A DNA stretch of 64,000 nucleotides from Auanema rhodensis. Its lineage: Eukaryota; Animalia; Nematoda. Under the pieces are notes generated by a model. That model was not told where the DNA came from, made no database searches, and was given only the letters and a program-made list of their open reading frames with translations. The stretch covers positions 13,392,001 to 13,456,000 of the forward strand of contig OZ059894.1 of the NCBI GenBank assembly GCA_964057225.1, read 5' to 3'. Positions 51,735 through 55,963 of this stretch are shown here, piece after piece; the first letter of the stretch is position 1; the number at the start of each line of letters is the position of its first letter. A program made the translations under genes and the position numbers.

Positions 51735-54198
51735 TCAGCATTTGGCAAGAAGTTTGGTAGCCTCATCAAGAAGAGCGATTTCAGCATCATCAACAGGTTT
51801 CATTTGCTTAGCAATAAGCAAGAATTTCTTAGCGTTAGCCTGGAAAAAAAATCAGTAATTAAAATATACTTTTTCCTTTTTATGTACTTTGTCACTTTTT
51901 TGAATATAACAACGAGCGATGTAAATTAAATTTTCAATCCATTCTTGTTTCTGTTCATATGCATTAAGAAAATCCTTCAAAGCCTCCTCAAAGGTCGCAG
52001 ATGGAGGGGTTCCATACAAAACGGAGGCAGCCTGATAAAATACCTTGCAATAAATTAAACAGAATATAACTACCTTTCTCTCAAGCCATGTAAGTCCAGC
52101 TACAGAAAATGAATATCTACCTCTCATATGTAATAAAGAATACTCCTTTGGGTCCATATTTAAAGCTTTGTCAAGATACTCCTAAACACCATAAAGTTAT
52201 TTGGTTTAAATATAGTTTAACAAAGTTTACTTTGAATTTTCCACCTTGCTCAATTTTTTCTTTGGTTCCAAGATAATCCGTGCATTGTCCTGTCATCACA
52301 GCTGCCCATTTAACAGCAGAAAAATTGTTTTCATCTACTGTCATAGCGTCAACTCCATATTGTCTACCTAAACAATATTTGTATCTAAAATTAAATAACT
52401 GGGATTAAACCTTCAAACAATAGTTCTTTTTTCTTGTTTTTATCGACAGTTCTACATGCAACCTCATGGCACGATTTGGCTAAACGCCAAAGGAGTTCCG
52501 CATTACTTTTTTCTCCATCAACGTAATGCTGTATATAGAGGGGGGACTAAAGGAATACGCAAAAAAAGTAGTTTTCATGATTTTCAAATCAACGTTTAGC
52601 AAAAAAGTACAATATATGAAAAATATAATTAGAAATACCTTCTTTAAACTATCATAAGCCTTGGCAACATCATCAGTTCCAAAAAGTAGATCAACATCAT
52701 TGAAAGACTAAAAACAAACAGTTAACTTAAAAAGTATAGTTGAAGGTGATCCTCAACCCCAACACTAACCATCCTTATGAAAAACCCGAGTCAAATAGAC
52801 GAAAGTAAAGCGAAACCCTGTAGAGTCCGAAATAAATGAATCAAAACGAGATAAAGAGAACAAGAACAACGCAAGCAGCACTAATCATTTAAAAAATTTT
52901 TGAATAACTATCTTATCAGCAACATTTGTTTGATGAGTTCTTGTTTGATAGTCACATTGTCTTTCAATTAATCTAATAACCAAAACAGTTTAACAAACTA
53001 CAAACTACTTCACAAAAAAGTAAGAAAATAAATGTTGACAATATTATAAGTATAGAAAAGAAAATTATATAGAATTTAATGTATATAATTCATGAGAGTG
53101 CTCAATAGAAAAGCGCGAAAACAGATATTTAAAAATTAGTTCAAAGTACACGTTCTCACGTTGAAAATTATTCTCGATCGAATGGCGGAAAAACCAGATT
53201 GTCATAGGTCAATGTGATACGAGGCAAACAACAACAAAAAAAGGAGTACCAGACATCAAAAATGATTAGATGGTACAAATTCATCATGAGACCTCGACAT
53301 CAGGCACCATATGAGTGTTGACGCTCAAACTAGTATTTGGCTATGCCTCAAACAAAAGAAAAGGACCAAAACGTTATGAAAGTTTCGAAGATGTATTAAT
53401 CCAAGAAGTGAGGATAGAAAGTGGTGAGAAGTTAGCGCGGAGCAAACATTTGATCGATTAGTCACTTGCCGATAGTGAGGAAGCGATGATACAGGCTGTC
53501 AATGTTATTGCAGCTGACTAAATCGAGTTAATATTTTATTGGTTAAATCAGGGAATCGCAGCTATATGATAATATAGATAACACAACATATAAAAAATAA
53601 CAAAAACTGACTATTTTAGGAATTGTTATAGAAGGTCTCGAAGGATCGTTCAAACAAGGAATAGTAACAGTGTCGTTATCCCTGAACTAGTTCATGCAAA
53701 ATAGATGTTCATGCACATTTACATTACCATTCCTCGGATGCATCTGCATATTCCCCGTCTGAGGACAATGACTGCGTACTTTTCACTCGATTAATATGAG
53801 ATAGTAATTCAGCTGTATCAATATATTAAAACACTAAGAAAAACTACGTACTTTGATCGCCTTCAAATGTAACTGAGCGTTCGCGAGATTTCATAGGACT
53901 TCTAGCTTTCACTGCCAATGCTTCTACTCTTAATACTTCCACCCGTAATAGATCTACTTCGATACTGAATGCTTATTTATTGACATAGTTCAATATTTTC
54001 TGTACCGTAATTTTCCTAATTCATGCCTAACTAGTTCTCTTTCAAATTGGCTAATTTTATATCTCCGAAAATAGATCAATATACAGTAGCCTACAAAACG
54101 GAATTAATTACTTATCAAAGAGATAGTGAACCTGCAACACTTGATATTGCGGCAACCCCAGCTACTTTCAGGAAGCGATCAGAGACATCAAATAGCAT
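51735..54198 (-). CDS. rmd-2: RMDN-family TPR protein; long membrane-anchored isoform (ATG 54198) and short isoform (ATG-only exon 52770-52772)
   Basis: [54 protein letters not shown]; five upstream exons join in phase to SFNDVD. Confidence 0.88.
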
Positions 54199-54452
54199 AT
54201 TGCCAAGAACTTCCTAAGCACACAAATTGAAATTCAATATATCGTTTAAGTTCAAGCCTGCACATAATGAAAATATACTATTTTAACGCAAATTTCAAAT
54301 GTCGTAATAGATAACATACATTAAATGGAACATATCCACATTTACCTTTAGTTTAATTCAATATTCATCAAACATTTAAAACAAAATAACATTTCATAAG
54401 AACAACAACAAATGAATACGAGTACAATTCGATTATCGTAATAACTTATTGC

Positions 54453-55963
54453 CTACATTTTATCATCCACTTTACATCGTTTAGCTTCTGGCAGAGTATC
54501 AGAGACCTTAAATCGAGAGTATTATGAAAAAACAAAATATCTATGCAATTATATAATGGTAGATATAACTAACCACTTACAGAGCTATTAGCAATTTCAA
54601 GCGACTTTCTCGCCATTTCTATAACACCCTCACGTGTATGATTTCCTCCAATGAATCCTGCAACAAAAATTATATATACATATATACATATGCATTGTTG
54701 TTCTCACCTGAAGTATGAACAAATACACAACCAGGAATATCGCTGACCTTTGAGAGATCATTATCTCGAAGGGATCGCCATGATTGTGGAAGTGGAAGTC
54801 TGATATACATTACGTACAAGTGTCACAAGAAAAAATAAAAACCTATTTTCAAAACTGGAAAGATTGTTAACAGGTATGGCTTGAATCCTCCACTGATTAG
54901 CCGTTGTATCTGCAAACGTCGTATATCATTAATTAACTTAAGGGACAAAACCTTGGAAGAGCATATAAGTCATGTTCTGATTTAATAATCCCTTCTCTTC
55001 CTCAATCGTAAAGAAATGCTCTTTCCATGGAACACCTCCATTTTCAAGAAGAACTACACGACCACTGCTATCAACCTAAAAATTAAGTATACAAAAATAT
55101 CCTTAGGTTTTTAAAACCTCAAAACGGTTGTTTATAGCATTTTCTACCAGTTCTCGTGCGGGCCACCAAACATTGTGAAGATATGTAATAGTTTCTAATA
55201 ACTCAGCTAGAAACATTCCGTAAAACCTATTGAAACTATTTGAAAACAAACATCCTACGCAATTCATGGCTTTTTGAAAACGGTCATCTATATCAACGTT
55301 TTCTTCATTCCAATGAGGGTTGAATCTTCCAACTCTGCCTGATATGCCACCAGATGAATGATACCTGTAGAAAATAATAACAAAATACAATAAAAATGAT
55401 CAACCTTGGAGTTCCTTCGTATTGCGATATACCATTGTCTATGGCATCAATTTGCTCCATAAAACTCTCGTAAACACGGTTATAATAAATGTTTAACTTC
55501 GGATCATTTTCTTCCAAGTGAAGGTGCTAACAATTTAAATTGAAATTGAAGTAAATGTACAAATACATACTTCTTGAATAAGTCTTTTACCATAATGAGC
55601 ATATATCAAGCCAGCAGAACTAAGCTTGGTATTGAATGGAAGTATGTTTAAGGTTTGCAATGTATGCGTAAATTCCCTTAAAAAATATATAAATCCACAT
55701 ATTGTATAAAAGGAAAACTTTTGGTGGTGGTCATAACGCTTGGTGGTATGATCATAAGTTCCTCCAACATCCACAACTATGTCGCATGTTTTTAGCAGTG
55801 CAGGATCTCTAGTTCTATACGAGCATAATTAACATTATATAATCTCTTGTCTAAAATACCTGACTATATCGTAATCCTTGTATTCATTAATATGTTTTAG
55901 CATAAAACAAGCAAGAGCTTCATCGCAATGAAATTTTCCATTATGAGTTCCAATTTTACCCAT
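54453..55963 (-). CDS. MYG1: MYG1 (UPF0160) exonuclease
   Basis: [26 protein letters not shown]...[37 protein letters not shown]. Confidence 0.95.

Follow-up and report, generated by a model that had tools for sequence, protein, structure and literature searches.

Results and Discussion

The locus described here raises the question of whether one nematode gene can supply both a membrane-anchored protein of the ER-mitochondria tether kind and a soluble TPR protein, as a first-pass annotation of this DNA had proposed. The window, that is, the whole stretch analyzed, comprises 64,000 nucleotides of the Auanema rhodensis genome (GCA_964057225.1, contig OZ059894.1, positions 13,392,001 to 13,456,000), and coordinates refer to it unless another contig is named. 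The explanation that best accounts for the observations overall, and that we hold with reasonable confidence, is a single gene of the RMD-1/RMD-2 group that encodes a long, anchored form bearing a FFAT motif and has a second first exon for a soluble form.

Gene model of the rmd locus

Five small exons lie on the minus strand between 54198 and 53612, beginning with an ATG at 54198; joined, they keep a single frame open over 140 codons (420 nt), and the introns among them are all of the GT-AG type and 39-46 nt long. Every peptide that the first-pass annotation had quoted from small exons upstream of the TPR part was recovered in its place on this strand. More specifically, E1 (54132-54198) provides the start codon and the first half of a predicted membrane anchor (MLFDVSDRFLKVAGVAAISSVA plus G), E2 (54006-54090) the second half of the anchor, its RRYK flank and the start of the predicted coiled coil, and E3 (53852-53964) the coiled-coil heptads followed by an RVxF-like RSVTF at 53879-53865. 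E4 (53728-53812) encodes a linker and a FFAT-like block and ends with TG inside a Trp codon, while E4b (53612-53681) encodes G and DNDTVTIPCLNDPSRPSITIPKI and closes in phase 0 at the donor ATA/GTCAGT (a slash marks an exon boundary throughout).

The Trp that ends SLSSDGEYADASEEW is therefore a split codon, TG/gtaatg...cag/G, interrupted by a phase-2 intron of 46 nt. Left unspliced, E4 reads ...SEEW and then TAA, and the sole donor there is TG/GTAATG. Because the frame without E4b runs into TAA, E4b is essential for reaching phase 0. With E4b included, the earlier proposal of five exons that close in phase 0 and match SFNDVD is borne out, with canonical splice sites and an intact frame. A separate 117-aa gene ending in EEW-TAA was also considered and was dropped on recognition of the 46-nt intron and of E4b.

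The phase-0 end of E4b is compatible with the exon that opens with SFNDVD (TCT TTC AAT) at 52707, from which it is separated by a 904-nt intron (52708-53611), a candidate site for an internal promoter. The TPR part consists of six minus-strand exons between 52707 and 51735: E5 (52639-52707), the first common exon, encoding SFNDVDLLFGTDDVAKAYDSLKK; E6 (52411-52528), encoding HYVDGEKSNAELLWRL...; three exons of the RMD domain, namely E7 (52231-52367), placed from its sequence and from a genome search with the Auanema sp. JU1783 protein P0168, and E8 (52074-52181) and E9 (51888-52031), both placed with Pfam PF21033; and E10 (51735-51839), which ends in the stop codon TGA (51737-51735) and is followed on its 3' side by AATAAA at 51626-51621. 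For the second of these exons, comparison with relatives makes 52528 the most likely start; a further in-frame acceptor, at 52546, misfits the orthologues. On this model the long form has 11 exons and about 366 aa, and the short form 227 aa. The 5' exons of the gene are small and easily overlooked, which the 11-exon model corrects.

A 98-aa piece composed of E8, an in-frame intron and E9 matched Pfam PF21033 (RMD1-3) at 33.3 bits against a cut-off of 26.7, and a scan of the genome with the RMD1-3 profile gave 29.7 bits at the locus. A Pfam search of the five upstream exons returned no match. Exons were searched singly, and the joined sequence was used for hydropathy, for alignment to the proteins of relatives and for the tree. 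Rfam and tRNA scans of the 904-nt intron and the spacer toward the neighboring MYG1 gene gave nothing beyond one sub-threshold match attributable to chance, and the genome contains a single copy of the intron. Searches of the intron and upstream region took in 53091-54500 and 53095-53611, with 53054-53090, within the 904-nt intron, left out.

Genomic neighborhood and relationship to C. elegans rmd-2

The locus is a single gene of the RMD-1/RMD-2 group that lies 3' of MYG1 and is positionally orthologous to C. elegans rmd-2 (C27H6.4). The MYG1-family gene (54453-55963, minus strand) is upstream of rmd, with its start at 55963 and its stop TAG at 54455-54453, and the spacer between the two (54199-54452, minus strand) is 254 nt long and contains ATTAAA at 54357. 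Candidate AG acceptors in the spacer include ...gtgtgcttag/g, 15 nt before the ATG of E1. In C. elegans a MYG1_exonuc gene likewise lies upstream of rmd-2 on the same strand, at a distance of 259 nt, and in a Rhabditophanes gene prediction (P0004) MYG1 and rmd are fused. The layout is thus of the operon type, with a common strand and a short gap, and the tight, conserved spacing together with the Rhabditophanes fusion fits an operon. In the cDNA contigs of C. elegans rmd-2 the 5' UTR consists of 73 nt of unspliced genomic sequence, and no leader is seen. Transcription of the long form from a MYG1-rmd operon, and promoter choice between the two forms, both of which had been suggested at first reading, are guesses.

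On the other side of the gene, a TFIIB-like gene with the same orientation (51354-50200, minus strand) starts about 270 nt past the poly(A) signal of rmd, so that MYG1, rmd and TFIIB may make up a cluster of three genes. The downstream neighbor of C. elegans rmd-2, in contrast, is on the other strand.

The long isoform b of C. elegans RMD-2 (378 aa; P0199) has the same order of parts as the A. rhodensis protein, namely a TM segment, a coiled coil, K/RxV[ST]F, a FFAT motif (SDSEYGDAEEDW) and the RMD domain, although the two extensions are only about 25% identical. The genes also agree in structure. C. elegans rmd-2 has the same TG/G phase-2 intron inside a Trp codon, after SEYGDAEEDW, and its next exon has the GTCAGT donor; in both species the longest introns precede the SF.. 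exon (the two longest in C. elegans). Contigs from C. elegans RNA runs (L005, L006) contain an intronless 378-aa RMD-2 open reading frame. The two genes differ in the internal ATG, which in C. elegans is within the SF exon (..KTM SFEDLD) and in A. rhodensis on a separate exon, and in their family context: A. rhodensis has a single gene, while Caenorhabditis carries rmd-1, rmd-3 and rmd-6 as genes of their own and, within intron 3, an additional alternative exon.

In C. elegans an alternative first exon (L004, 6722-6783) lies in intron 3; it encodes a signal-peptide-like sequence, is spliced to the YTDDR exon and corresponds to forms of 265-273 aa annotated in C. remanei and C. brenneri. Its product would have a hydrophobic N-terminus and no FFAT motif.

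While the MYG1 neighbor and the common intron positions establish positional orthology, one-to-one orthology to rmd-2 was not recovered in a quick maximum-likelihood tree. In that tree the A. rhodensis and Auanema pair falls outside a Caenorhabditis clade of RMD-1 plus RMD-2, with moderate support (SH-aLRT 85-89), and the A. rhodensis gene is therefore best described as a co-orthologue of both. With the same support, the rmd-1/rmd-2 split is placed inside the Caenorhabditis lineage.

A candidate second first exon and a probable soluble form

An exon consisting of nothing but an ATG had been proposed upstream of the TPR exons, and ATG is indeed present at 52772-52770 (minus strand), followed by GTTAGT and a 62-nt intron. 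As the end of a second first exon with a 5' UTR, located in the 904-nt intron, it would probably give a 227-aa soluble form beginning M-SFNDVD, and this form would correspond to the product of the separate gene rmd-1 in Caenorhabditis. We consider a short soluble form from this gene likely. Part of the earlier proposal stands less firmly, as the mini-exon taken alone does not stand out from chance: about one ATGGT is expected in the 904-nt intron, and two are present. The soluble form is made plausible by first exons of the type 5' UTR plus ATG, and by alternative 5' exons, in relatives.

The alternative is that only the long, membrane-anchored form is made, ATG/GTTAGT being a chance match and the intron long for other reasons. 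While the ATGGT count allows this, several observations argue against it, and we regard it as unlikely. The N. brasiliensis orthologue is annotated with a first exon ending in ATG/gtgagg, a 788-nt intron and then SF.., and no upstream extension exons were found on its contig within 8 kb. Two cDNA contigs of relatives (L023/L024) show 70-95 nt of 5' UTR directly before ATG TCT TTC, so that strongylid relatives have, with cDNA support, the same "5' UTR + ATG / SF..." exon as the candidate in A. rhodensis. In ascarids, RMD isoforms of 208-459 aa use alternative 5' exons at the same acceptor, and the long and short forms of strongylids and ascarids are mostly annotated separately. The sequence of C. 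elegans rmd-6 reads ATG/gtaagt...cag/AGTTTTGAT (PMC8290264). Furthermore, the codon directly 5' of the SF exon in A. rhodensis is an in-frame TAG, which leaves no other simple start.

The gene content of the genome bears on the same point. No separate rmd-1-like gene was found when the genome was searched with the Pfam profile, with C. elegans RMD-1 and with P0168, and the only RMD matches were the rmd locus and an RMDN1-like gene on contig 7. If RMD-1 function is conserved, then in view of the lack of any other matching gene the soluble product must come from the rmd locus. The RMDN1-like gene (contig 7, 15089299-15090032; L002/L003) encodes an N-terminus that is short and hydrophobic (MVFGGGVGSLAISLF...), and C. 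elegans F33H2.6 is its probable counterpart.

In two species of Pristionchus, the locus numbers of long and short RMD genes follow directly on one another (P0159/P0167 and P0160/P0164), which suggests that a tandem duplicate took over the short form there.

Predicted membrane anchor, coiled coil and linker of the long form

Residues 12-30 of the long form are its sole strongly hydrophobic stretch (Kyte-Doolittle 19-residue maximum of 1.97) and are followed by the RRYK flank. They are predicted to form an N-terminal membrane anchor, a moderately hydrophobic signal-anchor that is helical in a model of P0168. A heptad region at about residues 35-70 is predicted to form a coiled coil, in which hydrophobic residues 50, 54, 57, 61 and 64 are conserved across nematodes with 4-3-4-3 spacing. 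The AF2 model of P0168, built on a 48-sequence alignment, has a helix from 4 to 68, confident up to residue 68, then a non-helical, disordered segment (69-143, pLDDT below 50) that holds the FFAT motif, and finally a helical domain (144-367, pLDDT above 90).

Between the coiled coil and the FFAT motif, an RVxF-like [KR]x[VI][TS]F occurs in about 12 of 20 nematode long forms (KTVSF in C. elegans), and crustacean relatives carry such a motif as well (KKTVSF, RKNVSF). The RSVTF-type motif could be a PP1-docking site.

A similar set of parts is known from vertebrates. In RMDN3/PTPIP51 and RMDN2, too, an N-terminal anchor is accompanied by a coiled coil, a linker with an acidic FFAT-type motif and a C-terminal RMD/TPR domain, while outside the motif and the TPR domain there is no detectable sequence similarity to the nematode protein. 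The same order of parts was found in lobster, amphipod and acoel proteins, in shark RMDN3 and in fish and bird RMDN2. The FFAT motif and coiled coil of PTPIP51 mediate VAPB binding (PMC12364515, PMC7705450), human RMD-3 uses its FFAT motifs and coiled coil to bind the MSP domain (PMC12364515), and a conserved motif has been predicted in RMDN2 (PMC7705450).

The FFAT motif and its predicted partner

A FFAT-like block had been noticed at 53729-53770. It is present, and its core can now be placed at 53753-53733 (EYADASE); its final Trp, on the other hand, is the split codon described above. The core fits the conventional FFAT consensus EFFDAxE, in which position 6 is free (PMC8306308), at positions 1, 2 (as Tyr), 4, 5 and 7, that is, at five of the six specified positions. 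Its flanks, SLSSDG before and EWDND after, are acidic and Ser-rich. Position 3 is Ala rather than Phe, and the upstream tract offers one acidic residue plus serines. PTPIP51 carries a pair of FFAT motifs, of which one is phospho-dependent with Thr at position 4, whereas the nematode protein has one conventional motif with Asp at this position.

Conservation of the block was assessed by aligning 20 nematode long forms, drawn from rhabditids, strongylids, diplogastrids, tylenchids, Strongyloides relatives and ascarids. All 20 sequences keep the aromatic residue and the Ala, and 18 keep the Asp; the two residues past the variable position are acidic in 18-19 of the 20. Across the whole extension, the nine-residue windows of highest identity all fall on residues 102-117, which are the FFAT block.

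The predicted partner is encoded in the same genome. A VAP/VPR-1 orthologue was found on contig 7 at about 15211186-15211800 (L011, 1407-2012), its MSP domain split over four exons, with KVKTTAP and KHKFMVQ intact. The latter corresponds to the part of VAPB with K87 and M89, which are needed for FFAT binding (PMC8306308). About 120 kb separate this VAP gene from the RMDN1-like gene.

On the model of RMDN3/PTPIP51, the long form would be fixed by its anchor in the membrane of an organelle (probably the outer membrane of mitochondria), and the FFAT motif in the disordered linker would bind VAP/VPR-1, an ER protein, at its MSP domain. Both the VAP docking and the membrane location are predictions, and the anchor could instead target the ER rather than mitochondria.

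A different role may be envisaged for the block even if the long form is real: it could be a phospho-regulated acidic motif or bind an MSP-family or MOSPD partner, with no part in a VAP-based ER-mitochondria tether. The Ala at position 3 and the Ser-rich flank count toward such a role, as do the lack of a tethering phenotype in C. elegans mutants (PMC8290264) and the association of RMD-3/6 with MSP fibrous bodies (PMC12364515). More specifically, C. elegans rmd-2; rmd-3; rmd-6 triple mutants have no phenotype in the assays done (PMC8290264, PMC12364515). Against it, the Tyr/Phe, Asp and Ala at positions matching EFFDAxE are near-invariant across three nematode clades, the FFAT motifs of vertebrate RMDN proteins bind VAPs (PMC7705450, PMC8306308) and the contact residues of VAP are intact in A. 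rhodensis. A role of this kind appears distinctly improbable, and docking on VAP is the preferred reading of the block.

Probable joining of the extension to the TPR exons

That the extension is joined to the TPR domain in one protein is, on the evidence of sequence comparison, very likely. A HMMER search of the full library with the 98-aa piece returned 358 homologues at E<=1e-3, many of them 340-400 aa long with the match near the C-terminal end. The closest relative found is P0168, an unnamed 368-aa protein of Auanema sp. JU1783. Its residues 1-142 are 60% identical to the joined 140 aa, and the TPR part is 84% identical. P0168 runs unbroken across the E4b/E5 junction, with IPKI/SFADVD where A. 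rhodensis has IPKI/SFNDVD, and E4b is 79% identical to residues 120-143 of P0168. When the genome was searched with this protein, the exons were found in order (E = 7e-15 for E3+E4, E = 3e-4 for E4b). Although P0168 is from another species, it is colinear with the A. rhodensis gene at every exon junction.

The join in A. rhodensis is thus argued from orthology, through the colinearity of P0168 and through C. elegans RMD-2. Colinear annotated orthologues, a common intron position and MYG1 synteny together favor the long architecture of TM segment, coiled coil, FFAT motif and TPR domain that had been proposed. Several further nematode long forms come from contigs that barely exceed their open reading frame, and the Ascaris entries are cDNA-derived. 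Word searches with P0002 and P0168 found no A. rhodensis protein in the databases. Four sequencing runs from a single study, with RNA guessed as their source, contained about half of the words sampled, which fits expressed exons and resolves no junction.

It is very improbable that the five upstream exons form a small gene of their own, coding for a 162-aa anchor and FFAT protein unlinked to the TPR gene: the frame left unspliced at 53611 does stay open over another 22 residues (VSFCYFLYVVLSILSYSCDSLI), and AATAAA follows its stop within a few bases, near 53540, but these residues resemble the typical translation of a T-rich intron, the phase-0 end of E4b at its GTCAGT donor is the same as that of the corresponding C. 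elegans exon, and the extension and the TPR domain occur in one protein in Auanema, C. elegans and about 20 other nematodes, several of these from cDNA.

Conclusions

The novelty of a single gene with an anchored, FFAT-bearing form is smaller than the first-pass annotation implied. For C. elegans RMD-2, an N-terminal extension in which a TM helix is predicted has already been described, and binding to VPR-1 has been proposed (PMC8290264). The TM-bearing RMD-2 isoform, the conservation of FFAT motifs among RMDN orthologues, and the architecture and the tether idea are all in print. What is added here is the gene model in the A. rhodensis genome, the explicit conventional FFAT motif in nematode RMD-2 and the single-gene state.

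A wider scheme may be offered tentatively. A. rhodensis, Auanema and probably strongylids would keep an undivided ancestral gene with two first exons, one for a VAP-docking tether and one for a soluble, RMD-1-like microtubule regulator, and Caenorhabditis and Pristionchus would have split these roles later; in addition, [KR]xV[TS]F may be a PP1 site that controls the serine flank of the FFAT motif and hence tethering.

The extension of C. elegans RMD-2 has been said to share no sequence homology with that of PTPIP51 (PMC8290264). The FFAT motif in the extension of nematode RMD-2 is conventional and deeply conserved, which makes RMD-2 a concrete candidate for a worm partner of VAP/VPR-1 on another organelle. 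The single gene of A. rhodensis, next to the pair rmd-1 and rmd-2 of Caenorhabditis, would make a neat example of isoforms parcelled out to duplicate genes.
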